64,000 bases of DNA from Piromyces finnis finn. Taxonomy: Eukaryota; Fungi; Neocallimastigomycota. The DNA is taken from NCBI GenBank assembly GCA_002104945.1, contig MCFH01000051.1:310001-374000 (forward strand), given 5' to 3'. How positions within the stretch are numbered: position 1 is the stretch's first letter; each line of letters begins with the position of its first letter. The notes under the pieces are model-generated. The model ran no database searches. It worked only from the letters and a program-made list of their open reading frames with translations, and was not told the DNA's origin. This document shows, piece by piece, positions 3,625 to 62,808 of the stretch. The translations under genes were made by a program, and so were the position numbers.

Positions 3625-3969
3625 TGAAAATGTTGGATAAAAATATATCAATCGATATCAATATCAAAAAATTCGTGTCATTAAAAAAAATTGAATAGAA
3701 AATATATCATTTTTTTTTAACTATAAATAATTAATTATAATTCAATCTATTGAATACTACAGGAAATGCTTCGAAAAGACAAGCTTTCTTCTCTTTCCAT
3801 TTCGTATTCGATTTGATTTCATTCATATAAAAATATATATATATATATATATAAAACTATAATCGAAAGATCCTTGATCTTGGAGAGGAATGACACGAAT
3901 TTTTTGATATTGATACTGATATCAATATATACATTATATACAATGATATGTTTTTATTCAACATTTTCA
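3625..3969. mobile_element. MITE-like element, copy 1 (long imperfect TIRs, TG...CA ends)
   Basis: Perfect 27-bp inverted repeat: TATCAATATCAAAAAATTCGTGTCATT (3656-3682) and AATGACACGAATTTTTTGATATTGATA (3889-3915). Outer inverted repeat: TGAAAATGTTGGATAAAAA (3625) and TTTTTATTCAACATTTTCA (ends 3969). Confidence 0.7.
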
Positions 3970-4016
3970 TAACTGAATGTTTAATCATTAATATTATAAA
4001 AATATATTATATTAAA

Positions 4017-4592
4017 ATGAAATTAAGTATTATCTGTATTGAATTATTGGCACTATTATGCTTAAGTTGTGCCTATTTCATTAATAATGAAGAAATTACA
4101 TTATCTAAAAGAGATGTAGCAAAGAATGTATGGAATTTGGGTGGATTAGTTGTTGATGTTGGTATAAAAATTGGTATGTTTAAAGATAGTTATAGAAAAC
4201 ATAAACAAATACTAAGAGGTCAATGCGAAAGTGTTGGTGTTAGACCATATGGTACTATTGAAATTTGCTTACAAGGTCCTAATAGATTATATGGTAACTG
4301 GCGTAATCCATCTGTATTTGGATGTTATCATTTTGGTAAAGCATATACTAATTCTTTTACTGAATGCTGTGTTGTAGTTGCTAATGGTAATGTTAAAGTA
4401 CATAATACTATGTGCTCAGGACCAGCAAAAGATTTATTCAATGTTGATATATTTAAACGTTTATATTATCCTCAATGTGCTTATCGTACTAATAAATTTA
4501 ATACACAATGTGGTAATGTTAGTAATAAAACAAGAAAATGTGTTAACTTAAAGGGAAGTGTTGAAAAAGAGTGCAAAGATTATCCAAATTAA
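4017..4592 (+). CDS. Small secreted Cys-rich protein (191 aa): signal peptide, short propeptide, two KR dibasic sites; preprotoxin/effector-like
   Basis: The in-frame ATG at 4017 gives MKLSIICIELLALLCLSCA (hydrophobic signal). LSKR and IFKR are Kex2-type sites; 10 Cys after the first KR; intronless. The ORF-track start at 3948 lies inside the repeat. Confidence 0.8.
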   Translation: MKLSIICIELLALLCLSCAYFINNEEITLSKRDVAKNVWNLGGLVVDVGIKIGMFKDSYRKHKQILRGQCESVGVRPYGTIEICLQGPNRLYGNWRNPSVFGCYHFGKAYTNSFTECCVVVANGNVKVHNTMCSGPAKDLFNVDIFKRLYYPQCAYRTNKFNTQCGNVSNKTRKCVNLKGSVEKECKDYPN

Positions 4593-4713
4593 GTATTTTT
4601 TAAAAAGTATTCTTATATATATATATAAACACTTCCATTATTATAGATTATATAGTATATATTATTCTATCTATTTATATTTATAGTCATATTCATATTA
4701 TATATAAATGTAT

Positions 4714-5041
4714 TAAAATGTATTAAAATATAACAATATCAATATCAAAAAAATCGTGTCATTAAAAAAAATGAATAGAAATATATAATTTTTTTTAACT
4801 ATAAATAATTAATTATAATTCAATCTATCGAATACTACAAGAAATGCTTCGAAAAGACAAGCTTTCTTCTCTTTCCATTTCGTATTTGATTTGATTTCAT
4901 TCATATAAAAAAAAAAATATATATATATATATAAAACTATAATCGAAAGATCCTTGATCTTGGAGAGGAATGACACAGATTTTTTGATATTGATACTGAT
5001 ATTGATTATATACATTGATATATTTTTATTCAACATTTTCA
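4714..5041. mobile_element. MITE-like element, copy 2 (direct repeat of copy 1; left end degenerate)
   Basis: 4737-4995 aligns by eye with 3656-3915 at roughly 90% with small indels. It has the same inner TIRs (4737-4763 and 4969-4995). Its right end ATTGATATATTTTTATTCAACATTTTCA is at 5014-5041. Confidence 0.7.
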
Positions 5042-18958: not shown

Positions 18959-21900
18959 ATGAAAGCTTTTAGATTAGGAAAATCAAGAAAAAATAGTAAG
19001 GGACAACTTGGAAAAGATAAATCAATAACATCAACTTCATCTAATGCCTCATTGCGTAGTAATTTAAAACATGATAAAGTTCAATCATATACCTCTACTC
19101 TGTATAACTCCATGAATCGGAGTTTTACTTCCTCAACAAACACTACTAATTCGCCAATAAGATCTAATTCATATACCAATTATTTGGCAAATAGTAATAA
19201 TAACAACAATAATAATAATACTATGAGTCATAGAGAAGGCTCACCAAAATCATTAACTAGAAATGTATCATTGGGAAAAGTACCAGAATTTCGAGTTGGT
19301 GTTAGATTAAGACCAATGCTTGAAACAGAAAAAGATGATTCTGAAAATGAAGAATTAGTATATCTCCTCCCACAAAACAATATTCTATGCATACGGGAAC
19401 CTGGTACTGATCGCTTGCCTGAGATTGATGATGGACCACCACCACCGCCAGGTACTATTGCTCCATCTATGGGTCCATATATAGGGACAGATCCATTTAA
19501 TTATGTTTTTGGCGCAAAGAATAACCAAGAAGATGTCTATATGCAAAGTGTACATCCATTAGTTGAACATTTCCATAAAGGTAAAAACTCTTTAGTTCTT
19601 GCATATGGTCAAATGGGTTCAGGTAAAACATATACCATTGGTTTTCAACCTGAAGATTATAATTTAGAGAATTTTCAACCTGATAAAATTGGAAAGGAGT
19701 TAGGTTTTGTTCCAAGAGCCTTTCAAGAAACTCTTTCTTATATGCATCATTTAAAAAGTCAAGGACGTTCTGTAAATCTTCTTGTAACATTTATAGCAAT
19801 TTCTTGTGAAGATATAGCGGATTTATTAGGGGAGTCTATTACTAGATACAAAAGACCTCCATCTCCTGGTCCAAAAATGCATTCCCCAAACGATAAGCGC
19901 GAGACAACTCCACAACCTAAAACAATTACTGTTCATGATCGTGGAAAACAAGGTACTTATCTTAAAGGTGCTAAATACGAACGAATAGAAAGTATGGAAC
20001 GTTTAGCTGAATTGTTATACCGTGGTACTACTTTTCGTCGTATTGTCTTTGGCCCAGATTCAGAAAATCTTTCACACGCTATACTCTCATTTCATTTAGA
20101 ACAAGAAAATCCTAAAAATAATAAAGATAAGATTTATTCTAAACTTAATTTTGTTGATCTTTCTTGTACTGAAAAGATTGATAAAGTTGAAGCTAGAATG
20201 AATCGTATGGAAACAGGTGTTAATGATAAAAGTTGGTTAGCTCTTTCAAAAGTTATTAATCTTTTGACTGGTCGTCCAAAAGGTTATATACCATACCGTG
20301 ATTCCAAGTTAACTCAATTTCTTCAAGATTCTTTAAGTGGTGATGCAATTGTTTTCTTTCTTTCATGTTTAGCTCCGACTGCTTGTGATGAAAGTAAGAG
20401 CGTTTTGAAATATATGATTCGATCAACCAATATTGATCAACGTCAAACGGTTGTTCCACCCAAAATTTTAAAGAGTATTCTTTATAATTTAGAAAATATG
20501 ATGAATGATACACCAACTTCTCCTGTAAATGCTTTAAATCACAGCAGCAATAACAATACTATTAGTCCTAATCAAAGTATAATAAGTCACAATAGTAATA
20601 CAAGCAATAAACAAAAATATGATTCTCCTGCATTAGCTAATATATCTACTACTGTTAATCTTACTTCACCAAATGTAAATGAAGACTTAGCTAGCCCAGG
20701 ACAAGGTGATTCTACATATCCACGTATTTCTAATTCTAATCAAAGTTTAGATAGCAGTTTTTCATCTATGTCAAGACTTGCTGCAAATACTAGTCTTTTA
20801 TTTACAGACGCGGATGCTTCAAACACAATGAGTCCTATATATGAAGAAGAAAATAATCGTGTATCTCAAACCTATAGTAATATCTCAAGTGCTTCAAAAG
20901 GTACTTTGGAAAGACCACCAAGACGTCCAATCAGTAAACGTACTTCAAGTTTGGCTGTTGTAAATAAAGAAGGTAATCTTATTAATCGTACAAATCAACC
21001 TAGTTTACATACTGTTCAAAGTGTTCCTAGTATTAATAGTTTACGTAATAGTTTGATTATGGAACGTAAAAGCAGTGATCGTAAAAGTAGTACAGCTGGA
21101 ATGACTCAAATGCTAGAAGAGCAACTTAAAGCTCTTGATGATATGGAAAAGATGAATAATGAAGATATATCCAATTTAAATAAAAGTAAAGAAATCAAAG
21201 GTCATCATAAAAAGAATAGTGATGGTAAAAAACGTATTAGTTTCCATAAACATTTATTATCTTTCCATAAAGCCGTTTGCACTGAAGTAAATAAACAAGT
21301 AAAAGATAAAGAAATAGAACCAATAGCTAATCAAGTTCCAATTCCAATACCTAAAAGTAATGAAAATATAAATGATTCTCTTGCTGTTATGCTAAATGAA
21401 ATTCGGAATACAATTGGTGAAAAAGCCAGGGCAAATGATGATGTAAATATTAATTCAAATATAAATTCTGCTAATAATGTGGATAAGTTAGTTTACTACC
21501 TTAAAATTCTTCTTCAAAATTATTCCAAGAATGAAGAACAAGTATCAAAATTAACTGCTCTTATTAATAATAGCAATATTATTAATAACAACAATTATCA
21601 CAGCAATCCTTTAAGTGCTGTTGTTTCAAATGTTGAGAACTTAAAATATGAAGAAAGTTCTGGATCTACACCACGTTCAAGTATTGAAATTGTAAATGTT
21701 GCGAATACAACTCCTCCACCAAATCATCCACCACCACCTGTACCAATTGAATCTCCAATTATTAAGCCACCTTCTTATAATAAAAATAATAATAGCAATC
21801 AAATGAGAATAAATACATCTGAATTAGGTTCTGATGATATTAATACTAGTCCAATAAATCGTAACATTAATTCAAAGGAACACAATTTATCTGCATTAGT

Positions 21901-23899
21901 AAGTAAAGGAAAATCTGTATTGAAAAATAGTTTTGTATATAAAAATTCACCCACTGCATCTCCAAATACATATAGTGAAGATATGGTTATGGAAGATATG
22001 GATCAAGCAGAATTAAATAAATATATTACAAATCTTTCTATCCGCTTAAAGAATTCCATTAATGAAGTTAAAGAGGAAAGAGATAAATGCGATCTTTTAC
22101 GCCAAAAGGAAAAGAATTTGGAAAGAAAACTTCGTATTCGTGATAAGGAGTTAGAAGCATTACATATAGAATTGGATGAAAGAATAAATTCATTTAATAA
22201 TGCTGTTAAGGTATTAGTAATGCAATTAGGTATGGCTCAAGAATCTAAAAGTAAAACTCAAGAAGAATTAAGTTCTGTTGAGTATCGTACTATGGAGTTA
22301 GCAAAATCCCTAGAAACTATAAGTGAATTAATGAACGGGGATCGTAAAAATAATCGTAATGCTGAAGATAAGTATCATAATTTTGTAGCCGAATATGAAG
22401 AAGAAATTAATATTTTACAAAGTGAAAAATCTCAAATTATTCATGAAAAAGAATCACTTAAACAACAAAATGCTAATTTGCAATCAAAAATTAATAAATT
22501 GGTTAAAACTTTGAAAAAATTTCAAGTCAATTTAATTGAATCAGAAAAGAGAAATTATTATGATGCAACTGCGAATATGACTAATTTAAAAAACGAGAAC
22601 AATCTTTTAAAGCGTAAAGTAGAAGAACTTAATCAAACAAAAGCCTTTTTGGAAAGCAGTTATCATGATCTTCAAGTGGAATATGAGAAAGTATCTCAAG
22701 CAGCCAATTCATCAAGTTATGAAATGGATGAAGACAATTCAGATCAAATAGAAGAATATAAAAAAGAAATTGAACGCTTGAAGACTAAACTTCGTGAAGA
22801 AGAAGAGGATCATCAAGCCGAAGTTTATAAACTTTTAGATCGTGTTGTTATTGCTGAAAGCAAGCAAGGATCTACTAATTCAAATGTTAATAATTATACT
22901 AAAGAATTAGAGAAAAAATTAGAAATAAGTTATGCTGCTCAAAAAGAATTAAAAGAAAAATTAAAGGCAACAGAAGCTGCTATTAATAAGAAAAGCTTGG
23001 AAAACAAGGAATTAGAGGGTAGATGCTTATCCTTTAAAAAGTCTATTAGCACACTTCAAGATACTGTAAACACCTATGAAAATCATCAAATAAAGCTTTT
23101 AAATACAAATTACAATTTATCATCCCAACTTAATAATAATGGCAAGAAAGGTAAGACTTTAAATACACGCTCTTATTCTGGCTTTAGAACTATAATGCAA
23201 GATATTAAGAAAATGACAGTTACTGAATTACAAGATGAAGTTGTTGAATTGAGACAGGAAGTTGAAAGCATAAATAAGAAAAATTGGGATCTTAAGTTAG
23301 AAGTAGATCGTTATCAATCTGCAAATGAATCTAATCGTCGTACTATTATGCTTTTAATGAAACGTATTAATGGTGAAAAGGGTAATACTAGTAAAAAGGA
23401 TGATGGAAATACTAGTCCTATTGTTGGAGTTGATGAAAGTCGTAGTTCTTCTTTTTCCAAAGATCAAGCTAATTTAAGAAATTCCAATTCATCACTTAAT
23501 TCCAAGCACGAAAGCAATACAACACTTTTAAATAGTGAAACATTTGATGAAGATTATAGTAAATCGTCATCAAAATTACCTGTCTTATCAGAAGTTAATA
23601 ATGAAACATTGCTTAAAGGTGAACGTATTGATGATGAAGATACTACTAATGTTTCTCCATATCTTATTAATAAATCTAATTCATCATCTTCTTCTACAGC
23701 TGTTAATTTACCAATCCACGCTATGCCAAATCATGAAGGTTTTATTGCTAAGGATTCTGAAGCACGTTCTCTTTCTCAAGAGTCTTCATCTTCTGATTTC
23801 TCAATGATTAAGGTGAATGATGAAGTATGCATACGTGAATCCTCACTTTCTACAGAATCAATGAAGTATTCTCAAGATATTAATTATAATGACTATTAA
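18959..23899 (+). CDS. Kinesin-like protein (N-terminal motor, long coiled-coil tail; kinesin-4-like or divergent)
   Basis: FRVGVRLRP, P-loop GQMGSGKT and YIPYRDSKLTQFLQDSL are present, followed by a heptad-rich C-terminal half. 1646 aa, no intron needed. Confidence 0.92.
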   Translation: MKAFRLGKSRKNSKGQLGKDKSITSTSSNASLRSNLKHDKVQSYTSTLYNSMNRSFTSSTNTTNSPIRSNSYTNYLANSNNNNNNNNTMSHREGSPKSLTRNVSLGKVPEFRVGVRLRPMLETEKDDSENEELVYLLPQNNILCIREPGTDRLPEIDDGPPPPPGTIAPSMGPYIGTDPFNYVFGAKNNQEDVYMQSVHPLVEHFHKGKNSLVLAYGQMGSGKTYTIGFQPEDYNLENFQPDKIGKELGFVPRAFQETLSYMHHLKSQGRSVNLLVTFIAISCEDIADLLGESITRYKRPPSPGPKMHSPNDKRETTPQPKTITVHDRGKQGTYLKGAKYERIESMERLAELLYRGTTFRRIVFGPDSENLSHAILSFHLEQENPKNNKDKIYSKLNFVDLSCTEKIDKVEARMNRMETGVNDKSWLALSKVINLLTGRPKGYIPYRDSKLTQFLQDSLSGDAIVFFLSCLAPTACDESKSVLKYMIRSTNIDQRQTVVPPKILKSILYNLENMMNDTPTSPVNALNHSSNNNTISPNQSIISHNSNTSNKQKYDSPALANISTTVNLTSPNVNEDLASPGQGDSTYPRISNSNQSLDSSFSSMSRLAANTSLLFTDADASNTMSPIYEEENNRVSQTYSNISSASKGTLERPPRRPISKRTSSLAVVNKEGNLINRTNQPSLHTVQSVPSINSLRNSLIMERKSSDRKSSTAGMTQMLEEQLKALDDMEKMNNEDISNLNKSKEIKGHHKKNSDGKKRISFHKHLLSFHKAVCTEVNKQVKDKEIEPIANQVPIPIPKSNENINDSLAVMLNEIRNTIGEKARANDDVNINSNINSANNVDKLVYYLKILLQNYSKNEEQVSKLTALINNSNIINNNNYHSNPLSAVVSNVENLKYEESSGSTPRSSIEIVNVANTTPPPNHPPPPVPIESPIIKPPSYNKNNNSNQMRINTSELGSDDINTSPINRNINSKEHNLSALVSKGKSVLKNSFVYKNSPTASPNTYSEDMVMEDMDQAELNKYITNLSIRLKNSINEVKEERDKCDLLRQKEKNLERKLRIRDKELEALHIELDERINSFNNAVKVLVMQLGMAQESKSKTQEELSSVEYRTMELAKSLETISELMNGDRKNNRNAEDKYHNFVAEYEEEINILQSEKSQIIHEKESLKQQNANLQSKINKLVKTLKKFQVNLIESEKRNYYDATANMTNLKNENNLLKRKVEELNQTKAFLESSYHDLQVEYEKVSQAANSSSYEMDEDNSDQIEEYKKEIERLKTKLREEEEDHQAEVYKLLDRVVIAESKQGSTNSNVNNYTKELEKKLEISYAAQKELKEKLKATEAAINKKSLENKELEGRCLSFKKSISTLQDTVNTYENHQIKLLNTNYNLSSQLNNNGKKGKTLNTRSYSGFRTIMQDIKKMTVTELQDEVVELRQEVESINKKNWDLKLEVDRYQSANESNRRTIMLLMKRINGEKGNTSKKDDGNTSPIVGVDESRSSSFSKDQANLRNSNSSLNSKHESNTTLLNSETFDEDYSKSSSKLPVLSEVNNETLLKGERIDDEDTTNVSPYLINKSNSSSSSTAVNLPIHAMPNHEGFIAKDSEARSLSQESSSSDFSMIKVNDEVCIRESSLSTESMKYSQDINYNDY

Positions 23900-45281: not shown

Positions 45282-48200
45282 TTAGTAATCTAATTTAAAA
45301 CGTTCTTTGTTTTTGGATTTGTTTTTTCTTTTTTCTTTTTTTGCTTTTTTCTTATTTTCTACTCCTAAATATATACTGAAAGGTATTGCTTGGCTTATTT
45401 TAATTTCACTATATGCATTTTCTAAAGATGATTTTAATGATTCAAGTTCTTCTTCTAAAAATTCATCTAATTTTTTATTCCATAATTCTTTCTTTTCTAG
45501 CAATATAAAAATATCCCAATCATAATGATTAAACTGGTCACTAATTAAATATCTTGCAATCATTTTTTGAACTGCAATGCAAAAATCTTCTTTCCTAATT
45601 TGATTATCTTTATTAAAATATTCATCTAATATTTTTATTTGTTCTTCTGTTAGTTTTTTATTTGCATCTTCAGAAACATATTTAATTATTTTATTATAAT
45701 TTAATTGTTCTATATAATCATATAAAGTTATTAATTGACTTAATTTTAAATTTAAATGATTAGTATTAATAAATTTTTCAAATTCTTTATTCAATTTAAT
45801 AACACTTTTAGGTAATTGCTTTATTTCTTCCAATAAAAATTCCTCACCATTAATGTTTCTCTTATTATAAAAGTACTGGAAAAGAGATTGTATACAATCT
45901 AAAATTATACTGTAATCAAAGTATTCCATAGAATTAGTGATATTAGCTTTATCTTCTTTTGATAATTCTTCTTCAGATTCAATCTTACTTTTAAAATCAG
46001 ATATGATATTGTAATTTTTAGTAAATCCTTCAAATTTATATGAGATAAATCTTTGTTCTTTTTCATTTTTAAATAATTTTTTTCCATTCAATAAGATATT
46101 TAATAATTCATTTTCTATTGAATCAAAATCAATAATAATGCTATTATGATTAGAAAAGTTTATATCATTATTATCTTTAACGAAGTTTCTATAAGAAAAT
46201 GCATTAATTAAATCATCAAAAGAATCATATATATCGTTCTTTATATTAAGAGAAGAAACTTCATTAGAATTTGCATCTTGAATTACTATTTCTTTTTCAA
46301 TTTGATATGAATAAGATTGTATATAGTCTCCATTAGATTTTTTTGGAACTAAACTTCTTAAAAATTCATTATGGTATGTAATACAGTCTTTGTAATATGT
46401 TGCAATATATTTTCCAAAACCATCTTCAAAAGTATCATTTAAAATGTATGCTAAAACACATTCATCATCAATATATTTTTTTTCTAATTTACCATGACAG
46501 TCAATATTAGTTAAATCGGTATATATTTTTTTCCATCCTTTTTTAAAGTATTTAAATAGTTTTTTCATATAATTATCATCTTTAAGCTCATTCTTTATTT
46601 TTATACTTTTGGCTTCATTTCTTGATATCTTATTAGAATATTTTTCCAATACATATACAATAAATGGATTTATTAATTGGAAAGTTTCTAAGAATTTAAA
46701 TTTATCAATTTCTGCAATGGATGCATTAATGTAAGAACTAATAGCAGGATATTGTTGAGCTTTATTTGGTATTTCAATGAATTGATCATAAAATTTTTCA
46801 TATGAAGGATAATCAGATGCATAAAAATACCTAATTAATGGATAATTTTCTAGATTTAGTTTATTAATATTTGAAGTTTCTTCAATAATAGATTGTATTG
46901 TATCATCATTAATTTCAAGAATTTCCTTACTATTATTGATATACTGTTGATATAATTTTTGGAAATTAGCAATAGTATATTCTACTTTTTTATTGCATTC
47001 AGTTTCAAAGAGCATTCTTTCATGGCTATTTTCCATTTTAAATTCATTATTCGATATTAATATTGCAATATCAGGTAAAATTAAATTTAAAAAGCACTGT
47101 ATTTTATTATCAATTCCTTTTTTATTTAATTCAATATTTAATAATTCCCAAATGTCTTTTAAAATTGAGAAAATCGATTGTTTATCATCATCTTCATAAT
47201 AAAATTTAATTAAATCGTTTTCTTTTAAATATTTTAATTTTTCATCAAAGAGAATACAAGAGTAAAATATAAAACTTAATAATCTATATGTTATATTATT
47301 AATATTTCTTACTTCTTTTGTGGGATTAGTGAAATATATTTTTAATACTCTTTTTAATCCAGGTTTCTGAGTATTTTTTAAGATTTCAACTTCTTTTAAT
47401 AAGTCACTAAATAACTTTCCTGGAATGTTTTTATTTTCTGCTTGTTCATTTAAATTTTCAAATATTCTTAAATGGCCTTCTCTTTTATGTAACCTATGAT
47501 TTGTACCTCCAATTATTTTTTTGCAAAAAGAGCAATTACTAGTGGAGTTTGGTTGAGTACAATTATCAATATAATAAGACTTTCCACAACTGCATATGTA
47601 AACGCCACTTTTTTCCATAGAGGCTTTTTTATTATCAAAATATTCTTTGATTTCCTTAGCTGAATCTATTAATATACTATATTCCGGTTCACCTCCTGGT
47701 ATATAAATATTATTTATTTTATCCATTATTTCTGATGATAAAATATTTGAATAAACAGTATTTGGTTTTGATTGTGAGCATATAAATGCAAATTTATGTG
47801 AATATAATAATATTTCATATTCTGATAATGATAAATTTTGAATATTTGATACTTCCTTGAATAAAGATTCATAACTGTATAAAATTGAAACAATACTTTT
47901 TGAAGTTTCTGATATATTTGATTTATTCACAATATTTTGTAAGAAATGACACAATTTTTGATAATATGCATTATCAAATGGTTTTTTAAGTAGACTTGAA
48001 AATTCCTCATTTATAATTACATCATAAAAATTTAAAATTGATATATTTTTAGATAATTTTATAAGTTCTTTATTAGTTTTAAAATTATCTATTTTGCTTT
48101 CTCTATATAATTGCTTTAGTATTTTATAATTTTCATAAGAACCATTTTGAAGGAAAAGATTATTAAAAGAAAATGGAACTTTTTCAGAAAAATCAAAGTC

Positions 48201-51200
48201 ATCAATAAATAATTCTTTTTCCTTTATAATTTCAACTAAATTTTTATAATTTTTAATAATTTTATTTAGCACTCTTAATATATATATTTTTATAACTTTC
48301 CTTAACTTAGTTGAATTATCTAAAAATTCTAATATACTTTCCATGTTTATGTCGCTTAAATCATCATTATTCATAAATATTTTACATAAATGATAGCAGT
48401 AGCATTTTATATATGAAATACAATATAATATTTTTAATTTATTATCTTTGGTGATTTTACAATTATAATTCTCAATAATAGAAATAAAGCTTCTAAATAT
48501 AATAAAAGATTGTTTTAATATTTTTTCTTCATCGTTATCTTTTAAATTAAAGTATTTTATAATGGACTCATCAAATAAATATATCAAAACCTCATTTAAT
48601 ATATCACTTTCAGTTTTATTTAAAAACATAATAATTGGATTGTACTTATCATTTTCTATTTGTGATATGAAATTTACACCCATATTTTCATCTTCATTGC
48701 TGTAATAATTATTGATATAATTATTGATATATTCTTCTTCATCACTACTATAGTTATAAATTTTTTCTTCCTCATCACTACTATAAATAATAATACTTTC
48801 TTCATAGCTACTATTATCGCTTTCATTATTTTCATTTAGAGTATATAAATTTGAGGATATCTTATTAATTATATTTAAATTATATTTTTTAAATATTATT
48901 TCAAATATTTTTTTAGATTTAATAATAAGATCATTATCCGAACAAATAATATTTAACATAATTAACATATAACTTTCATTATTAGATATATTTATCTTAT
49001 TATTTAGCAATTTTACTTTTAAATTCAAACAATTATTAATAGATAATTTTTCATTTAAAAACTCAAATTCTTTGATAATTGGATTTTTAATGTCTTTATT
49101 GTTGGATAATTCTATGTTTGCATTATTTAAATATTCTGGTAATAAATATATTTCATTTTCATTTCTTAAAAAGTCTAAATAAATTTTTAAATTTTCTTTC
49201 AATGGTATTTTTGATTTACTAAATTCTTCCTTTACTTCGATTAAATCTCTTAAGTACAATATTTGTTTCAATGTTAAACCCAAATCAATATTTACTTTAA
49301 TTACAGTGTTAGAAATAATTTTAATTTCTTCAAAAAGTTCATTAAATAATTCATTTGATATAACATTAAAATTGTATTTGTAATTAAGAATGCAATAAAC
49401 TAATGATTCGTACAAATTGAATATTATATCATTTCCGATAGAAATCTTCTTATTAACTTTCATAAATGTATTATCTAATATTTTTAAAATAAACATTTCT
49501 GTAAAATCTATAAAAATAGAATCCATAAAGTTAATAAAATCAACTATAATGATAATATATTTTTGGAATGTTTCGATAAATAAGATAAATTTTGTTAATT
49601 TTTCATATAATAATTTAATATCATTATCACTATATTCTTCATAATCATCTTCATTTTCATTTTCATTATTAATCATTTCAAATAATTGACTTAGTGTATC
49701 AAAGAAACGTAATATTTTCTTATTTTTAAATTTATTATTTGATTTTGATAAATAGTATATAATATAATCTTCAAATAAAATTTGAAGTAATTTCTTTCTA
49801 TCAAGTATATTTAATTTCTTTTTATTGTAATATAAAAATATATCCGCAAAGTATTGTTCATCAAACTTTCTTTTAATATTCATTTCAAATATGTATTTTT
49901 CCTTCTTATAGTCATCTTCACTTTTAGTAATATATAAATTTTCATTTTTGAAATAATCATTTTTTAAGTTTTCAACAATGTATTTGTTAATTTTATCAAA
50001 TACAGGAATAATACATGGGTATGAAATCCCTAAAATTAAATCAATATTAGTTACTTGAGATATGGTTTGAGAAGTTAAGGTAGATTCTTCCTTTAATTTT
50101 TTAATATTTTCTTGATAAATTTTTCCAAAATATTTATTTTTCATACATTTATTAGTAGATAATAATGTAGAAAATATATTAAGATTTTCTAATTGGATTA
50201 AAGAACAAATTATAGCATTCTTATAAATATTTTTCATATGCTTAATAAGAACTGAAATAAAATCAATATCATTTTCTTCAAAATTATATTTTTCAAATAC
50301 TTCCATAATTATATTATTATGAATGGAATTAATTTTGTTTAAGACTAGTGAAAAAATATTTCCCATTAATACTTTATTTCCAATAATTAAATCACATACT
50401 TTATTTATATATTCTTCTTTTGAGATATCAGTAAAATTAATTTTATCATTATAATGGATAAAAGTAAATGAATGATATAGTTCATTTTTAAATTCTTCAT
50501 CCAAGTCTATCAAAGTTTTATTTTTAAATAATTCATTTTTGGAAGCACAGATAATATCGTTTAGGTTTGTTATTTTTCCATTCAAGTTATCAATGAAAAA
50601 TTGTTGCCAATTTGTTAAATGTGATATTAAGTATTCATTTTGTATTCTATCTTCTTCATTTTCAATATTATTTTCATTATTTATTGTAATTCTTTTGATA
50701 TGAATAATTAAAATAATTGGTTTTAATTCATTTTCATTTTTGGATGATTCAATATTTTCTATTAAGTAATTAACATGATTTAGATGTTTACATTCATAGA
50801 CATCAAAATGAATAATGCATAGATTATAGTTATTATTGTTGTAATATTCAATAATACATTCTTCAATATCACTTTCTGAACTATACTGACTAATAAAAAC
50901 ATTATTCGTATTTTCTTTTGTAAAAAGTCCATATTTTTCATTTTCAATATTATTTACTTCAAATGCAGAATCTAAAATATTAGAAAAAGTGTAAATAATA
51001 TGTTTATTAATATTAATTTTTTCCAAATAATATTTAATATTTTGATGTTGTTTTGAAGATTCGAGATAAATGTTTAATATCTTTTGATATTTATTTTTAT
51101 GCTGTTTTCCATATTCAGAATATTTAAAAAAGAATATTATATCTTGTGAAAATGTTGGAACAATTTTATGATATATTTTATCTTCTAGTGTTTCTTTTAA

Positions 51201-54200
51201 TTTATCATCATATATTATATTATTTGTAATTAGTTTCGATTTAATAATATCATTATAATTATTTCTTCTTCTAATTTCATTATTATTTGTCTTATTATTT
51301 ATTAACATTTGATAGATAATACCACAAATTTCTTCTAAATCACAATTAACTAATTCTGATTTTAAATCAATTTTTAATAAATTATTCTTTTTATTACAGA
51401 ATTTATTTATGTCATTAAAAATGTTGTTTGTTAAATTTATTGCTTTAGAATCTAGTAAATTTTCGAATGAAATTATATGTTTTTCAAATCTATTAATAAA
51501 TGGAGGATCTTGTTCATTAATTTCTTTCTTATCTAAAAGAACAATACATCTGAAGTTGTCATTGACTTTATAATTTTGTGTATTGGAATTTCCTAACGCA
51601 ATTCTTGCATAATTGCTATTTCCGACTTTTCTGAAATTTTGATTAAAAAGGTCATATAACGATGGATACATGCTAGATAAGTTCTTTAATACCATTACAG
51701 TATCTTCATTCATAGAAATTTGTACCTTATTTAAAATTTTCGCACTATAATATCCTTTTAATGTATCTTCATCAAAATCACTACCATAATAAAATACATA
51801 ATTTTTACATAATTCTTGTATAATTAATGTAATTAGATATTGACTAATCGAACTTTTTGTTACAATTAAAAGATATCTACTATCTGAATCCTTTATATTA
51901 TTAAGGACACAGTTCATTACATCATATTTACTTATATCGTTAACATTTTGATATAAAGTTTTAAACATTTCTTTAAATTTTTCAATAGAATAATCTAAAC
52001 CACCAAAGTTTCTTTCAATACTTTCCATTAAAATATCATCAATTATGCACTTTTCCGTTGGGAATTTATTTTGAATGAATAATTTTGATAAGATTTTTAT
52101 TAAATGGTAAAAATCTCTAGTACCATGAAATTCTTTAATATTCTTATTGGGTAATTTAAAATTAGTTTTATTATTATTTTTAAATTTTAGTGAATTATTT
52201 TTCAATCCTTCCTTATAATTATAATAAGATGATGATAAATATTCATAATAGATTTTATAATCTTGTACTAATTTTGGATCATAGGATTTAGCAATAGCTA
52301 AAGCTGTATCAATTAAATCTTGTTCATCAGGTTCAGGAATTGAAAGATAGATTCCTCTATTCATTTTAGATGCATCGAATGGCCAATTTGAAATACCAAT
52401 GAATGCTATTTTTCTTTCATTATCATCATATTCTAATTGTGAATGTATTACTTTTAGTGGATTATTTTTGGATACTTCCGCAAGTCCCATCTCGTCAAAA
52501 TAAATTGCTGATATAATTTCATTAGAAGTATTTTTTTCCAGTGACTTTCTTGCTTTTTCAAATATTTTCAAAATACCTTGTGAAGTACTTGTACGTGAGC
52601 CTTGATAAGATTTTGTGTATACCTTTGGGAACTCTCTAAAAAATTCATGAGATGAATTTTTTCCATTCATTGATTTAAAAATTAATTGTGCACTTAATGA
52701 TTTACTGCAACCAGGTTTTCCTATTATAAATAAAGGTATCTTTGTGTTTAAACAAACGAAGATAGCAAACAAGTTTTCTAATAAAGCTTTATTTCTAGCA
52801 ATACCTTTATCCAATTTTACAGCAGTTGCAATTTCATTTTCTATTTTCTTTGGAATATCTTCAAATTTAATTTCATTTTTAAATGATCTTTCCATTTTTT
52901 TTATAAATATTATTCTTTTATTTTTATCAAACAATCTTATATAATAACATAGGTATATACTTAAATTTAAGGAATAAATGTATCTTTTTTCATCATCTAA
53001 CATTTCTTTAAAATTTTTAATTATAAATTTATTTTTTAATAATTTATTACAAAACCATTCAAATAGAATACTTAATCTTCTAATTTCTCTTAAACTAACT
53101 GATGAAATATCAAAATTATCTCTTATATATTTATGAGCTTCAAAAATTGAATCTTCTGCAATTGTATGTATTTTATTTAAAATATACCTATTTTTAATAT
53201 TTCTTTGAAGAAATTCATAGGTGATATTTGATATATACTTTCTAATATCTTTATCATTTGGTGAACCAAAATCAAAAACAAAATTAAGAAGAGAATGAGG
53301 TAAAGGATTAACACTGTAAACAAGATTACTCACAATATATTTTTCATCTAATAACCCAGGAATTTCTCTTTTACTAACATCTACTCTATAAGGATTGCAT
53401 GCAGCAATAAATTTTACGTTTTCTCTGATACTTTCTCCCTTACAAGAATGCTTTAACATAATTTCAGTAATTAAACATAATGAATTACAAGTATTTATTT
53501 CATCAAAAAATATCCAAACCATATCCGTTTTCTCCTCATTATCTTTATTTTTACTAATATCATTAAATAAATTGTTATTTCTTATGAATTGAATAATATC
53601 ATCGTCTTCTGTACCAGCATGAATATTTAATGTATACATTGGAATAGATTTTAAACTTGCTATTATTTTTATTAAAGATGTTTTTCCACAGCCTGTTTCG
53701 CCCATTAAAACTACTGGAATATCAGTTCTAAGAAATAAAGATATTAAGATTAATTTCATAAAATTATCAGCTGTAAATACATAAGATTTTACAATATCAC
53801 TTAAATTTTCTAATTTTTTCTTATTAAATTCTCTTGGGCTTTCTTTATCCATTTCATCAATTGGGTTTAAAAGATTTAAAACTTTTTTAAGTTCAATTAA
53901 AAAATCTCTTGGTTTTAAATTATTATAATCAATAAGATTTCCTCTTTTGGTGGTATAATCAAGGTGATAAACAGCCATTAAATGACCAACTTCATTATCA
54001 TCTCTTTGGTTATTATTAGTAGTCTTTATAATAGAAACAGATTGACCGTCTTCATTGATTAACACTAAGCTTGGTCTTATTTTTTCAAATTGAAATATTT
54101 TTTTGTTTGTTAAATATAATGCAGCCTTTTCCTTTGCATCTTCAATTTTAATATCTCCTTTTTGTTGATTGTGGGTTAATTCTTGATCTTTAATAATATC

Positions 54201-57200
54201 ATTATATGTAGATGTTATGAATTGTTCTATTACTTTAGTCAATGAATCAACAAAAAATTTTCTAAAAGTATATAAATATGGATTGTTAAAAATACGATTA
54301 TAATCAAATAACTGATCAATATTTAAATGATAAGATTTAGAAAGAAGTATTAATTGTTCAGCAAGTATATTAATGAAAGACTGAACTTGATAATAATTTG
54401 GTTCTTTTCTTAAATATGAAAAAATAATATTGGAGCATTCTTTATTACTCATCTGTTTTATTTTAATACTTTGTGGTGTTTTGTTATTTATATTTGGAAT
54501 ATATATATCATATTTATTAATATTATTAATATTATTTAAATAATTACAAACAATTTGAATATTTTGTTCTATTCTTGAAGAAATGATTAATTGTGGCATA
54601 GATTTAGAAGTTATGTGTATATTCTGGAAAAATGATAATATTGGAAACAATACTTTAAAATCTATATTACCATTTGGGATTTCGACTTTAATTACTATTT
54701 CACTACTATAATAAAATTTTCTTTCATTAACAGAATAACATTTTAATATTAAAAATTCATACAAAAATTCCCTTAATACTTCTAATTGTTCACTGTAATA
54801 TAAATCTATATGTAATGCAATTCTTTGACCACTATATTTTAATAATCTATTAATAATGTCCTCTTTATTTATATTATCACCTAAAGGGAAATAAACATAT
54901 GTATATTTAGGATTTTTATTTTTGAAATCATTTTTAATTAAAGTGGACTTTCCTAAACCGGAAATACTACTAGAATATACAATTACATTGGAAAACAACC
55001 TTCTTTTCATTAATTTATAATCATAATATTTATGATATGGTAATTTTTTAATTTCTATAATAGCTTCATCTGTTTTATTTCCTTCTGTATAAATAAAAAG
55101 TAAGCACGAAACCATTTTTTTTGGATCACTAGAATAAAGTTCTTTAAGTAATTCGATTAATATGCTTTTCTTTCTACGACTTAAATTTTCAGGCTTAATT
55201 AAAATAAATAAAATATTTTGATCGCATTTAATACATCTATAAAGAAATGATATTATTTCATCTTCAGTTGTATCATTATTACAATATATGACAGTTTGAG
55301 CAATAGGAAATTCACCTGTTAAACTTAATGAACAATGTATTGTATTTTTTTCTATATTTTTTAAAGAACATGAATGACTATAAATACCCCTTTTTTTTTC
55401 ACCATGTTTTATCATTGCTTTTTTAAATATTGTTTCATAACTTTTATTATTAGCTTTAAATAATTTATTTAGATATGTAATATCATCATCAAACATTTGG
55501 TTTAATGATAGTTTATTTTTATTTATTAGAATGTTTGTTTCAAAATTCTTAATTAAATTACCAGTAATATATTTTAAAATATTATCTCTAATTTCATCAT
55601 CTATACTTTTACTTTTATCTTCATTTTCAATTTTGAAAATTTTCAATAAACTATTGTTTCTATTTCTTCTATTATTTTTAATATAATCATATATAAATCT
55701 AAATTGTCTACCATGAACTATTGTACTAATATAGTCTGACTGATATTTATTTTTAATTATATTTTTTGATGATTAAGAATTATATTTAATTCATTAATAA
55801 CTTCGGTCAAAGTTTCATTTTTATCATTATATTTTGATTTTGAAGCAAGAGCATTTCCATTTTTAATATCAATAGTGTATTCAATATCCTCAAAATAACC
55901 CTTTGAAGATATAGTTTTTAATAGCTTTAATATATCTTGTATATTAGTAATAATATTTGCAAATTCATCATAAACCTCGCCCTTTTTTAATAATGCTATT
56001 GTTCTTAATTCTGATAATTCATCATAATTTTTTATAACATATTTACCATTATTTTTATAAGAAACTTCACATTTATATTCTGGATAATTATTTTTTAAAT
56101 CTATTTTACTATCATTATAAATACTTTTTATATGAGCTTTATTTAATTCATTTGGATTCAAATGATTTGTAAATAATTCGTTAAAATCAGAAAACTTTCC
56201 ACTAGAATTCTCAAATTTAAGTCCAATATCATGATAATGTGAATTGGATTTTATAATATCAATAAATATATCTAAAAACTCTTTTTCACTTTTTTTTTAC
56301 TTTTTTTTGTTAATTCTTTTTGGAATTCAATACAAGTTTCTAATTGATCAATATCATTATATGTTAAATAATTATCTTCAGAATCATCAATAAATTCACC
56401 CATGGAATGAACATCACATATTTGTTTATCTTTTATAAATTCCATTAATTTTGGTTCTTCATACATCTTGTCCATCACTTCAAGTGCTATTATACTATCA
56501 TTGGAATTTAAATCCAATATATTTAAATTTAATAAATTCAAGGAATCATTTATTTTTATTAAATCATATAATGATGAATAATTTTCTAAATTAGTTTTGT
56601 TTTCTCTAAATATTGCTCTTAAATTTTCACCATTTAATTTGAAATCTTCCAAAAGTAAAATAATATTTTCATAATAACGAATATTACTATCTTTATTTTT
56701 TAAAAGTGACAGTTTTTCAATAACTCTATTTTCTTGAGTTTTCTCTATATCAAGAATATCAAGTAAAATATTTACTTCTTTCTCTACTTCGCTTTTTTCT
56801 ATATCTTTAATAATACTTTCTAATAAATCTAATTTTATTTTATTTTCAGTTTTTGAATTGAATAACACTTTTAAATTTAGAAATTCATTTTTTGTTTCTT
56901 CAAAAATGAAAATTTCATCATTATAACCTTCAAACTCTTTCTTTTTGATTTCATTAATTATAATAAATATTTTTGAGTTTTTGAATTTTGTAATTTGATG
57001 AGCTTCATGATATATATTTTTAAAATTGTATATTTCTAATCTTCCATCATCTGGAAAATCACAAATTGGATTATTAATAATTTGCTTTTTCAATTCTTTA
57101 TAATTATCAATTATATCATGTTTTTCATTTGGATAATAATTTGAAAAAACATTAATAATTTCATCAATTTCTCTACTCTTAGTAATACAATAATTCATTG

Positions 57201-59910
57201 TATTAACAGTTCTTTCATAGAGAGTAGTTATATTTTCTATATCCCCAAATGACAATATTTGAAATCTATCTTGTAATAAATTCCTATTTTTATCGATTTC
57301 TTTTTCATAGAGATTATACATTGATTCTATTTGATTCATACAAAATTCTAAATTTCTCAATTTTTTAATAATATTATTAACAACTTCTCTAGTTTTCTTA
57401 ATATAAGAAACATTTATAAAATTCTTATTATCTTTTTGTAAATCATTTAATTTAATAATATTTTGTAACAATTCTAATTCATCAGTTAAACCAACATTAA
57501 AAACATCTTCCTCTTTAATTACTTTGCTTTCTAACTTTTCTATAATTTTTATTTTAATCTTTTCTGATTTAGTTTGTTTCAAAGTTTCTATTACCTTATT
57601 ATCGGACATATCATTGATATTTATAATCAACTTTTCACATAAGCTTTCACTTATATCATCTGAAAAGTTATCTATAATAAATAAAAATAAATGATTTACT
57701 TCACGTTCATTTAAAACATTTTTAGTATTTTTTATAATACTTTTAGCACAATAATCCCTATTATCAGAAACTAATTTATATAAAGTATATATAATAATTT
57801 CAATCTCACAGAATTCCATACCATTTCTTTCCAAATCTTTCCCAAAAATATCTACTAGATTTTTAATGATATCTTCACTTTGTCTTGGAATTGATTCAAT
57901 ATTAAAAATTTTATATAATTTTGTTAAATGATTGTACGTTTTAGCATTCTTTACTAAAGATGAAATAAAAACATTATAATTTTTATTAAATTGTTTTTTA
58001 TAATCATATGGATCATTAATATTGCCAATAAATTTTTTACAGAAATCTTCATTAATTTCATCTAAATTAATAAATTTTATAAGAGAAGCAATTCTGGGAT
58101 CACTCTTATGTTCTTTATATGATACTTTAACATCTTCTTGTAAATAATTAAGTATTTCTATATTATTCCATTTATGTTTTTCAATTAATGATTTTCCTAA
58201 ATCATGAAGTGCATTATATACTTTTTCTAAAATCTTTTTAAATAATGGAATATTCGTATCGTCATATTTTAATATAATATTTTTTAATTCATTTAATTTA
58301 TTATAATCTTCCTCCTTTGTTTTCAATACATTAATTAGCATTAAAAATTTTCTTTCGATAGTATCATAGTCACTCTTTTCCAGTTGTACATTCATTTCAA
58401 TTAATTCATTAATAAACGATTCTAATAATTTAATATTAGTTTTACCATCTAATTCTGGTATTTTATCGAATTTTATTTTTACACACTTATTTATAATATC
58501 CTTTTTTACAGAACAGAAGAACGAAATATATTCATTACTATTAGAAGCTAAGATCAATACATCATTTATTGAGGTTTCTTCTTTATTAGCTTTTTCATAG
58601 ATCATTTTTAAATTTTCACATTTTAAATTCGAAAATATATTTTTATTCTTTCTAATAAAATTCAAAATTTCTTTCTTCTTTTGTATTTTAACGTAAATGT
58701 CATTAAAATTCTTTATATGATAAATTTGATTATATATTAATAAAAAGAAGAGTATGTTTTCGCGATTAATATCATCACTATTATATAAATCGAATTTATC
58801 TATAATCTTTTTATAAGGATTTATATTTATATTTATATCTTTTCTTATTCTAATTTCATTTTTTTTTATCAAACTTGATAAAATATTATTTAATAATTCT
58901 TTTACTTCTTTTGATAAATTATTAATAGAGATTTCATTATATAATAAAGTTTCAATATAAATTAATACATATTCAAAATCTATTTTTTTCTGATCAATAA
59001 TGGTAGCTTTACTTTCTTCCAATAAATATAGAACTAAAAGATCCAATTTTTCTCTAATCAAATACTCTTTATAAATAATAAATTTCTGCATATTTGAAAG
59101 ACCATACTTATTTATTATAAAATTCTTGGATTCATTATTATTCTTAAATTTATTACACATTTTTTTATTATTCCTTTATTTTATCAATAACTATATAAGA
59201 CATTGAATAAACAAATTTTTGTTGATACCTTTTTATACTTATACTTGACTTTGATTGGAATATTTCTTTATTATAGTCAAACTCAATTTTAATCCAATCT
59301 TCATCATTTTCCAATTCAATATTTGCTATAAATAAAAAAATACTTTTATCTTTAAAAGAATTATTAAATTCATCAACCTTCAATATCGATTCACTTTTAT
59401 TTCTCATAATTTTATTATTTTTAGACGAAATTAGTACCAAATCTTGTTTCAAAATTTTAATATTATTTTTTGATTTTTCTGATATAATATTAAAATTATT
59501 AAATTTCAAATCTTCGGAGCCAGAAATAACTAAATATATTGTTGTGTTTTGAATATCTTTTTCTTTCTCTTTTCTTATATCTTCTTCTTCGTCTCCACTT
59601 GATTTTTCTACATGATTTTCACCATTATTTGAAAATTGATTATCAAGATTACCTGATTTAGTATAATCCTTATCAATATTATGTATCTGATCATTATCTT
59701 GATAATATGAAGAACTTCCATTTTGAGATGTCAAATCAGAATTGTTAGAGTTATTACTATAACCGTTAATGAATCTCGAATTATAGCATGTTCGCTCGTC
59801 TAAATAGCTGTTTTCACTTTCACTTGAATTTCTCCCCAAATATCATCTTCACTATCGCTTACATCTATAATGTCATATATGTTATTGTCACTATATTTGC
59901 CATAATCCAT
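45282..59910 (-). CDS. Giant RNF213/mysterin-like AAA+ ATPase with RZ zinc finger (~4876 aa after correcting four 1-nt homopolymer frameshifts; as written the gene is broken)
   Basis: SSISGLGKST, GETGCGKT (53679-53702) with IFFDEINT, and GKPGCSKS (52698-52721) with YFDEMGLAE occur in RNF213 order and spacing. RZ finger at 47496-47600. ATG at 59910; ORF pieces 59839, 59160, 56161 and 55646 join by +1/-1/+1/+1 nt changes. Confidence 0.85.
47496..47600 (-). other. RZ-type zinc finger (RNF213/ZNFX1 family) coding segment
   Basis: YICSCGKSYYIDNCTQPNSTSNCSFCKKIIGGTNH aligns without gaps to human RNF213 CPNGHPCSVGECGRPMEQSICIDCHAPIGGIDH (recalled). Confidence 0.85.
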
Positions 59911-60573: not shown

Positions 60574-61293
60574 TTATTAGAGATAGTTATTTTTTATTTA
60601 CTTTATTTTATATTTTATATGGTCACATGGCCGTATATATGATATGGGTTGATTTTATGTTAATTTTATGTTATTTTATGTTAATTTTATGTAGAAAGAA
60701 TTTAACACGTGTATATCTTATTTTTATGTATTAAATTACCATTTTTATAATTATTTCTAAACTTAAAATGTGGTACATGCATTTTTTTTTTTTTTTTTTT
60801 TGGTTTTACCACATTTATATGGTTAAGCAAAAAAATTTTTAAAAAAATTTTATACTTGATCATTTTATAATTTTTTATCAAAAAAAAAAACTTTAAATGT
60901 ATATTACACATTTTCTAATTATAATAATTATTACATTATAGCTAAGAAAAAAAAAAGTATATAAATAATGAAAATTTCTTTCAAAATATTTTAAAATACA
61001 TCAAATTATTAGTTTATTTGCTTATTTATATTTTATTATAAATAAACAATAAAAAAACAATTCTTTCTTATATTTTTTATCACTTTTAAAAAGGTTTTAA
61101 TTATTTTAAAATTATTCAAATAATTTTTGGTTTCATTTTAAATAAAAAGAAATCAAATAAATTTTATATTCTAATATAACTTAAAATAAAAAAAAAAATC
61201 ATTTTGTTAATCCTATTTTGATTTTGATTTTGATTTTGATTTATATTTCGATTTTAATTTTGATTTTAATTTTGATTTTTGAAAATAATTAAA

Positions 61294-62808
61294 ATGATGG
61301 CTACTATCGCTACTATCGATAATAATAATCTTTCATACACCGAAAATGGTGCTATTGGTTACAAAACTTCTGGAAAAGATTTATTGGATATTAATTTTGC
61401 TATCTCTTCCATGAGAAATATGGATGAAAGTCAAATCATAGAAAAATATATTAAGGCTTTTAATGAAGAAAATATGTTAGCTGTTAAATGGTTGTTTTAT
61501 GCTAGAGATTGTAGAAGCGGTGTTGGTGAAAGAAGACTTTTCAGAATTTGTTTAGATTATTTAGAAAAAAATCATCCAGAAATTGTTCGTGCTTTATTAA
61601 GTTTGATTCCTGAATATGGTCGTTGGGATGATTTATTTGCTTTATTAAAAGGTCAATTAAAATCTGAAGTTTTCAAAGTTATCAAGGATCAACTCGAAGA
61701 AGATAAAAAGAATATGAGTGAAAACAAACCTATTTCACTTTGCGCTAAATGGATGCCTTCCATAAATACCTCTTCAAAAACAACTAGACAATTGGCAAGA
61801 TTACTAATTAATGAATTTAAATATAATGATAAGAAATATAGAAAGATGCTTTCTCAAATGAGATCATTCTTAAAGGTAGTGGAAGTTTCAATGAGCGCAA
61901 AGAAATGGAGTGAAATCAATTATTCTGCTGTTCCTTCAAGAGCAAATCTCATTTATAATAAGGCTTTCCTCAAAAACGATACTATAAGAAGAAAAGAATT
62001 CCTCGAAAAGTTGAAAAAGGGTGAAACTAAAATTAATTCTCAAGTCTTATTCCCTCATGACATTGTAAATAAGTATGGTTCATCTAACAACGTAGATGAT
62101 ACTTTGGAAGAACTATGGAAAGGATTACCGGATTATGTAAATGGAAATGGAAACACTATTTGTGTTGCTGATAGTTCCGGTAGTATGTGCTGCAATGCTT
62201 CTCCAAACTCATCAGTAACTTGTATGCAAGTTGCATTCTCATTAGCTGTATACTTTGCTGAAAGAAGTTCTGGAAGATATAAAGACAAATATATTACTTT
62301 TAGTTCAAGTCCTAGTCTTGTTGATCTCAGTGGTGCAAATACCTTGAAAGATAAATTAAGAATTATTAATAATCATTGTTATTGTAGTAATACTAATTTG
62401 GAAGCTGTTTTCAATTTGATTTTAGATTTTGCTGTTGATAATCAATTACCTCAAGAAGAACTTCCTTCTAACATTCTTATTCTTTCAGATATGGAATTTG
62501 ATTCAATGGTTGATTTTGGCAGCTATCAACGTAGTCAACGAGAAGCTTTCTTCTCAATAATGAAAAGAAAATTCAAAAGCAAAGGATATTTAATTCCAAG
62601 ATTAGTTTTTTGGAATATCAATAGTCGAACTGGAACTATCCCGGTTAAAGAAAATGAATTAGGGGTAGCATTAGTTAGTGGATTCAGTCCAGCAATCATA
62701 AAAATGGTTCTCAGTAATAAGACCGATCCATTTGAATGTCTCTTAGAACAACTTAATTCCGAAAGATATCAACCAATTGAAGATGCCTTAAAAGATTTAA
62801 TAAAATAA
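61294..62808 (+). CDS. DUF2828 family protein (TROVE-like helical domain plus vWA domain)
   Basis: YTENGA, WLFYARDCRSGVGERRLF, YGRWDDL, SLCAKWMP, YSAVPSRA; MIDAS DSSGS, TNLEAVF, ILSDMEFD; PRLVFWN, LVSGFSP. Intronless; first ATG at 61294. Confidence 0.9.
   Translation: MMATIATIDNNNLSYTENGAIGYKTSGKDLLDINFAISSMRNMDESQIIEKYIKAFNEENMLAVKWLFYARDCRSGVGERRLFRICLDYLEKNHPEIVRALLSLIPEYGRWDDLFALLKGQLKSEVFKVIKDQLEEDKKNMSENKPISLCAKWMPSINTSSKTTRQLARLLINEFKYNDKKYRKMLSQMRSFLKVVEVSMSAKKWSEINYSAVPSRANLIYNKAFLKNDTIRRKEFLEKLKKGETKINSQVLFPHDIVNKYGSSNNVDDTLEELWKGLPDYVNGNGNTICVADSSGSMCCNASPNSSVTCMQVAFSLAVYFAERSSGRYKDKYITFSSSPSLVDLSGANTLKDKLRIINNHCYCSNTNLEAVFNLILDFAVDNQLPQEELPSNILILSDMEFDSMVDFGSYQRSQREAFFSIMKRKFKSKGYLIPRLVFWNINSRTGTIPVKENELGVALVSGFSPAIIKMVLSNKTDPFECLLEQLNSERYQPIEDALKDLIK

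Follow-up and report, generated by a model that had tools for sequence, protein, structure and literature searches.

A probable full-length RNF213 (mysterin) family gene of the anaerobic fungus Piromyces finnis that lacks a RING and carries a rewired RZ zinc site

The window, which is the whole 64,000-nucleotide (nt) stretch of DNA that was analyzed, corresponds to scaffold bases 310001-374000 of the Piromyces finnis assembly GCA_002104945.1 and contains a very large gene (MCFH01000051.1:355282-369910) whose product is a relative of the animal ubiquitin ligase RNF213 (mysterin). The longest open segment of this gene comprises 3496 codons despite a G+C content of about 20%. At this base composition approximately one codon in ten would be expected to be a stop by our estimate, and 3496 open codons are far above chance. 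The initial annotation had described an intronless, single frame of about 4900 amino acids (aa), and this description did not hold, as the deposited sequence consists of four stop-to-stop open segments (59842-59171, 59175-56275, 56296-55760 and 55772-45285) and a separate frame that contains the ATG. Each segment is in a different frame from its neighbor and shares 5-22 nt with it. In tblastn comparisons, the four segments were colinear with residues 138-5041 of an intact relative of 5073 aa (P0001) over window positions 59716..45360. In GenBank the gene is split into three proteins of 229, 1124 and 3404 aa because the deposited sequence has frame breaks, and in two of these models the breaks are bridged by short "introns" (53 and 29 nt). 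The three models are probably fragments of one protein of about 4860 aa. The features of the gene are listed in Table 1, in which the residue numbers of the AAA, E3 and RZ parts refer, as they do throughout the text, to the 3454-aa open reading frame (ORF) at window:45285-55646:-.

Table 1. Features of the RNF213-like gene in window coordinates (pLDDT, predicted local distance difference test).
Feature	Position	Strand	Residues or size	Basis or remark
Whole gene	45282..59910	minus	~4860 codons if the true sequence closes the frame breaks	ATG at 59910, stop at 45282
Break 0	59800..59852	minus		53-nt GT..AG intron (GenBank 229-aa model) or frameshift that separates the ATG frame from the following segment
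N-terminal domain	59171..59572	minus	~125 aa	Conserved in fungal paralogues, alignment A3 of 17 sequences
Break 1	59171..59175	minus		Frame 2 to frame 0, adjoining an A7 run
Helical N-terminal arm	56317..59160	minus	948 aa modelled	Predicted all-alpha solenoid, AlphaFold2 pLDDT 89.2
Break 2	56275..56296	minus		Poly-A-rich stretch; spanned in the GenBank 1124-aa model by the 29-nt "intron"
Break 3	55760..55772	minus		At an A6 run
AAA2-type P-loop SGLGKS	54945..54962	minus	229-234	Motif
AAA3-AAA4 catalytic core	51384..53804	minus	615-1421 (807 residues)	phmmer to human and mouse RNF213
E3 module with the RZ finger and the beginning of the C-terminal domain	46647..50099	minus	1850-3000 (1151 aa modelled)	AlphaFold2
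Acidic, disordered low-complexity loop in the E3 module	48693..48842	minus	Model residues 420-469	pLDDT <50
RZ finger	47484..47615	minus	2678-2721	Pfam PF20173, E 3e-10, 40 bits vs cut-off 27
Region after the RZ finger	45285..47483	minus	733 aa	Predicted counterpart of the RNF213 C-terminal (E2-binding) domain

The AAA+ region contains all the RNF213-type motifs that had been reported from the first reading of the sequence, namely one GxGKS motif followed by two modules with complete Walker motifs. In AAA3 these are GETGCGKT (residues 649-656) and the Walker B motif FFDE (713-716), and in AAA4 they are GKPGCSKS (976-983) and YFDE (1049-1052). When the core was searched against PDB sequences with phmmer, it matched AAA3-AAA4 of human and mouse RNF213 with an E-value of 5.4e-96. 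The Walker A Lys and Walker B Glu of AAA3 (K655 and E716) correspond to human K2426 and E2488, and those of AAA4 (K982 and E1052) correspond to human K2775 and E2845; all four residues are near-invariant in 51 relatives. The roles of the human residues, here and below, are taken from PMC11549300. In the AAA2-type module the G, G and K of the P-loop are invariant in 56 relatives, and the Walker B motif (LHIDLY) has the Asp without the Glu. Because the Glu is missing, this module is predicted to bind nucleotide only, and by analogy it probably does so without hydrolysis. The chain may form a dynein-like ring of six AAA modules; the AAA2-like P-loop is invariant and the spacing is colinear with RNF213, while sequence profiles of AAA1-2 and AAA5-6 had no match in PDB. 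Between the AAA3 Lys and the first Cys of the RZ finger there are 2030 aa, compared to 2079 in human RNF213. The AAA+ rings of the dynein/midasin type were also considered, as the dynein-related Pfam families AAA_5 and AAA_7 match AAA3 of the fungal protein. Compared with dynein, however, the fungal protein has no stalk, linker or microtubule-binding domain, and RNF213 matches better by a wide margin.

The RZ finger was detected by Pfam above the cut-off, as had been proposed, although the C-terminal position that was originally assigned to it is incorrect because 733 residues follow it. The Cys/His spacing of the finger is identical to that of human C4505...H4537. The predicted nucleophile C2696 corresponds to human C4516 and the predicted general base H2717 to human H4537, while the predicted zinc ligands C2685, C2705 and C2708 correspond to human C4505, C4525 and C4528. 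Thus, three of the four human ligand positions are kept as Cys. The fourth, H4509, is a zinc ligand in the human protein and is occupied here by a Lys (K2689), and a Cys located two residues past the first one (C2687) is a new predicted ligand, giving a CxC in place of the human CxxGH. In an alignment of 88 sequences, C2685, C2687, C2705 and C2708 were kept in all 84 rows that have a residue at these positions, C2696 was found in 83 of 84 rows and H2717 in 79 of 83, and the position of H4509 was variable. Since C2687 is invariant and the H4509 position is not, the CxC form is the rule in the clade of fungi and rumen ciliates. The zinc ion is probably held by C2685, C2687, C2705 and C2708, with the CxC pair replacing the animal Cys...His pair. 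A second conserved His, H2725 (78 of 84 rows), is part of an R-x-G-H-x-R-I-F motif at residues 2722-2729 (window 47460-47483), which lies directly after the RZ finger; the Pfam match ends before it.

Similarity to RNF213 outside the core and the RZ finger is undetectable by sequence, and the sequence profile of the E3 module detects the RZ finger only; structure comparison was therefore used. The AlphaFold2 model of the E3 module, built from the 88-sequence alignment, had a pLDDT of 83.5 and a predicted template modelling (TM) score of 0.68. Using VIA-align, this model superposed on 9jwg_A, a chain focused on the human RNF213 E3 module (E3 back and shell), with a Z score of 20.9 over 760 aligned residues (model 21-1098 on human 3701-4747), while the next match had a Z score of 6.0. 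The top eight Foldseek matches were all RNF213 (E 2.8e-6), and the matching clusters in AFDB were fragments named "RNF213-like", "RNF213" or "RZ-type domain-containing". The agreement in fold with RNF213, on which the first interpretation of the gene depended, was thus borne out for the E3 module. The alignment reaches human residue 4747 and takes in the first ~280 residues of the region after the RZ finger, all of which are within the model. In RNF213 the C-terminal domain binds the E2 (10.1101/2025.09.05.674436).

The absence of a RING, which had been noted at the outset, was confirmed. Pfam detected no RING family in the gene product or in its close homologue P0006, none was present in the precomputed Pfam lists of ~200 relatives, and no cluster of Cys and His residues lies between the AAA core and the RZ finger. 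In fact, the only Cys/His clusters in the large ORF are the RZ finger and a non-zinc stretch in AAA1. The position of the human RING, which was interpolated so that the exact equivalent point is approximate, falls on a short low-confidence loop without metal ligands. A 50-residue acidic loop is located ~100 residues beyond this interpolated position. In animal RNF213 the RING is dispensable for the RZ-dependent activity (PMC11549300).

The N-terminal arm had been described as unrecognised, and this view needs revision. The arm is not an orphan, since it is conserved in 69 relatives among the fungi and ciliates (17-53% identity), and it is predicted to fold as an alpha-solenoid. In Foldseek searches the RNF213 N-terminal arm was matched with an E-value of 4.7e-4 and a TM score of 0.29, the highest TM score listed, among generic HEAT-like matches, and a Mytilus "RNF213" fragment ranked 23 in AFDB. 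The ~125-aa domain upstream of the arm looks beta-rich, judging from its alternating hydrophobic pattern. It had no match in PDB profile searches and no usable match in the Atlas, and no CBM20-like carbohydrate module was recognised by Pfam or by the PDB profile of this domain. Pfam matches of small pieces to RNase_J_b_CASP and TMEM232 were below the cut-off and were rejected. Upstream of the domain, the length of low-complexity repeats in the paralogues ranges from 0 to ~1000 aa; these extensions contained repeats only, with no real Pfam domains. In one paralogue of Neocallimastix lanati (P0023:200-900), a ~70-aa unit that includes SDNGLWWIFDK is repeated in tandem ~8 times. In other paralogues the N-terminal repeats are different or missing, and no part of the family varies more than the extreme N-terminus. 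Among the fungal relatives the N-terminal regions have diverged more quickly (31-53% identity) than the core (57-79%).

The frame breaks raise the question of whether the locus encodes an intact protein. Breaks 1-3 are ±1 shifts, each at a run of A. Introns were ruled out as their cause because the open segments overlap and join seamlessly on P0001 and other homologues; moreover, the 29-nt "intron" of the GenBank model is below the realistic size of fungal introns. The 53-nt intron at break 0 (59852-59800) may be real. At break 3, one added A gives ...NHQKNIIKNKYQSDY..., in agreement with the homologues. A word index of public P. finnis runs was used to examine break 3, the break covered by this test. 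Of 465 sampled words from window positions 52000-56500, 0.99 were present in each of two runs, one of DNA (X1) and one of RNA (X2), while only 7 of 10 sampled words from the 131 nt centered on break 3 were present in each run. A share of ~0.69 is expected for reads that depart from the assembly at the central A-run, and a share of 1.0 for reads that agree with it. The few words that are missing from the 4.5 kb (~1%) are concentrated at break 3. A search for transcript-derived protein fragments found none across break 3. The share of 0.99 in the RNA run indicates that the stretch tested is transcribed, and the gene as a whole appears to be transcribed; the run shows representation of this stretch, and its growth conditions are not shown.

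These data bear on the alternative that the locus is a recently inactivated pseudogene, in which the frameshifts are real and either the 3404-aa C-terminal ORF alone or no product is made. Such a reading would account for the 3-4 frame breaks in the deposited assembly and for the failure to build a single GenBank model, and the loss of one copy could be tolerated in a family with several paralogues. However, the breaks are all single-base changes at A-runs, no in-frame stop codon occurs in ~4860 codons at 80% A+T, and the full set of catalytic residues is intact. In addition, the 52000-56500 stretch is represented at 99% in the RNA run, and independent DNA and RNA contigs differ from the assembly exactly around break 3. 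As some of the words around break 3 are absent from both sets of contigs, an assembly error is likelier than a pseudogene. We consider it quite likely that breaks 1-3 are homopolymer errors of the assembly, and inactivation of the locus is regarded as improbable.

Our preferred interpretation, to which we assign a probability of roughly 0.8, is that P. finnis has here a full-length gene of the RNF213 (mysterin) family, which encodes ~4860 aa without a RING and whose breaks 1-3 are most likely assembly errors. Several observations weigh against this. Profiles of AAA1-2, AAA5-6 and the N-terminal arm gave no RNF213 match by sequence against PDB, and the likeness of the modelled arm to that of RNF213 is weak and lies among generic solenoids. 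The word test shows a difference between the assembly and the runs near break 3, which is not the same as restoration of the frame. The biochemistry of the RNF213 family comes from animal members only. Finally, mutation of the zinc ligand H4509 abolishes function in human RNF213 (PMC11549300); this ligand is missing in the fungal protein, and its substitution by the CxC is a prediction.

If this full-length RNF213-type protein is made, it would consist of an alpha-solenoid N-terminal arm, a dynein-like AAA+ region with two modules predicted to be competent for hydrolysis, an RNF213-type E3 module and the RZ finger, in this order. A charged E2 (E2~ubiquitin) would pass its ubiquitin by transthiolation to Cys2696 of the RZ finger, and His2717 would then act as the general base for the transfer of ubiquitin to the substrate. 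Binding of nucleotide by AAA3 and AAA4 may gate the E3 activity in a manner similar to that of animal RNF213, and the region after the RZ finger would serve as the counterpart of the E2-binding C-terminal domain. On the basis of the conserved residues and the fold, and by analogy with the animal protein, we infer that the product is probably a transthiolating, nucleotide-gated E3.

The closest known system is vertebrate RNF213/mysterin (human Q63HN8; PDB 6TAX, 7OIK, 8S24, 9JW1 and 9JWG). Both proteins have the AAA3-AAA4 core with the Walker A Lys and the Walker B Glu of each module, the fold of the E3 module, an RZ finger in which the nucleophile Cys and the base His are identically spaced, a long region after this finger, and a similar overall size and order of parts. 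In contrast to RNF213, the fungal protein has no RING, has the Cys of the CxC in place of His4509, and has no recognisable CBM20. The part before AAA3 is ~360 aa shorter than in RNF213, the E3 module contains the acidic disordered loop, and identity outside the core and the RZ finger is ~10%. The fungal family is multi-copy and is not interferon-linked. ZNFX1 is a second point of comparison, since its RZ finger is a transthiolating E3 element joined to an NTPase in one polypeptide (10.1101/2025.09.05.674436). The only part that ZNFX1 and the fungal protein share is the RZ finger, coupled in each case to an NTPase in the same chain. ZNFX1 has a superfamily 1 (SF1) helicase instead of the AAA+ ring, has no RNF213 E3 shell or C-terminal domain, and carries its RZ finger at the extreme C-terminus; no SF1 helicase core or NFX1-type zinc fingers were found by Pfam in the fungal protein.

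A homologue search returned 1922 proteins at E ≤ 1e-5. The closest relatives are proteins of 4.6-5.7k aa from anaerobic fungi that are named "hypothetical" or "RZ-type domain-containing", such that the automatic names already flag the RZ domain, just as the protein fragments of the present gene are already in GenBank. They were found in Piromyces sp. E2 (four paralogues), P. finnis, Neocallimastix lanati, Neocallimastix sp. 'constans' and Anaeromyces robustus, and the precomputed Pfam lists of these closest fungal relatives include no RING. At least two copies of the family were confirmed in P. finnis. In a maximum-likelihood tree of the core, which was built without an outgroup, the gene pairs with P0001, and the sister pair consists of Piromyces sp. 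E2 13322 and P0003. A further P. finnis protein in the list (318513) is placed together with Piromyces sp. E2 58828. These pairings across species indicate that the paralogues are older than the species split.

Next in similarity, with 44-50% identity in the core, are more than 1000 proteins whose genes lie singly on rumen-metagenome scaffolds of ~15 kb and on a contig of GCA_016295295.1. Because this contig starts with CCCCAAT telomere repeats (L005:1-30), it is interpreted as a gene-sized chromosome of a ciliate. With over 1000 different members, these RING-less RNF213-like proteins of the rumen-ciliate kind represent a very large expansion, and in the core tree they form a well-supported clade that is separate from the fungi. 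Gene transfer between ciliates and fungi was considered, and the tree, having no outgroup, speaks neither for nor against it. The ciliate proteins share with the fungal protein its architecture, its length, the CxC variant of the RZ finger and, according to precomputed Pfam annotations, the absence of a RING. They differ from it in sequence, with identity of only 17-28% in the N-terminal arm and E3 module, and in being far more numerous (over 1000 clusters). In the Atlas, related RZ-only clusters were found in Mucoromycota, Haptophyta and Mollusca, and clusters with both RZ and RING in Mollusca and Chordata. Related AAA-core and RZ clusters are assigned there to Mucoromycota, Foraminifera, Haptophyta, Rotifera and Mollusca.

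With regard to the biological role, the initial annotation proposed that the protein is part of a cell-autonomous system of defence not characterised in fungi, and our full-text literature search turned up no publication on non-animal relatives of RNF213. Under this proposal, the protein would be an antibacterial or anti-archaeal sensor and ligase that coats or ubiquitylates non-protein microbial surfaces, e.g. lipopolysaccharide, via the RZ finger. As a statement on biological role, the proposal does not conflict with the gene being a full-length RNF213 family member. It is modelled on animal RNF213, which ubiquitylates bacteria via its RZ finger and independently of the RING (PMC11549300). 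The proposal had treated a single-copy family as an argument against immunity, and the family proved to be multi-copy and diversified in anaerobic fungi, with old paralogues. The faster evolution of the N-terminal regions and their extensions, which range from none to ~1000 aa of repeats, would also agree with such a role, as would the very large number of relatives in the bacterivorous rumen ciliates. On the other hand, faster change of non-catalytic arms is normal, and a CBM20-like module for carbohydrate binding was not recognised. To our knowledge, filamentous fungi with cell walls do not routinely host bacteria in their cytosol. An immune role, for which the case so far is one of analogy, is considered unlikely, and it would matter greatly if true.

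A tentative possibility is that the family has a function in housekeeping, or in the quality control of organelles or lipids, that dates from early eukaryotes and is unrelated to immunity; control of lipid droplets or membranes, or the turnover of large assemblies, would be examples. The spread of related clusters from Mucoromycota to Mollusca points to an old and broadly useful function, the catalytic motifs are strongly conserved, and the gene is present in a P. finnis RNA run. Lipid droplets are also a site of animal RNF213 action. Multi-copy diversification and a patchy taxonomic distribution are nevertheless unusual for core housekeeping genes, and no conserved neighborhood or partner gene that would indicate a pathway was found. 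A broader scenario is that RING-less CxC proteins of the RNF213 type are ancient, eukaryote-wide, ATP-gated RZ ligases for cell-autonomous defence, to which the RING was added later in animals. Their multiplication in anaerobic fungi and ciliates, two unrelated groups of rumen eukaryotes, would then be a consequence of living in dense communities of bacteria, archaea and viruses, and the two groups may have exchanged genes. We regard this scenario as very doubtful.

RNF213 has been studied as a vertebrate gene of disease and immunity, with two ligase elements whose division of labor is debated. What is new here is the whole RNF213 architecture without the RING in anaerobic fungi and apparently in rumen ciliates, together with the rewired zinc site as a character of the clade and the corrected gene model. 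A clade that has the motor, the E3 shell and the catalytic pair of the RZ finger, and never a RING, supports the RZ route as the core and older mechanism. The rewired zinc site leads to mutational hypotheses that can be tested, and the clade offers naturally RING-free proteins for biochemical and structural work. For the anaerobic fungi, the annotation of this locus is corrected and a multi-copy family of giant genes is flagged.

The gene is arranged head-to-head with a neighbor at window 61279-62808 on the plus strand, which encodes a DUF2828 and DUF7788 protein (503 aa in GenBank). A conserved two-gene module was considered and is not supported, because the paralogues P0010 (L002) and P0006 (L003) have other neighbors and the pairing is absent beside them. 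The P0010 locus (L002:8001-22442) has a GenBank model with introns of ~198 nt and no straight-through translation, and similar homopolymer breaks may be hidden there. Elsewhere in the window, the plus strand carries an intronless kinesin gene of 1646 aa (18959-23899), whose product is identical to an annotated P. finnis protein.

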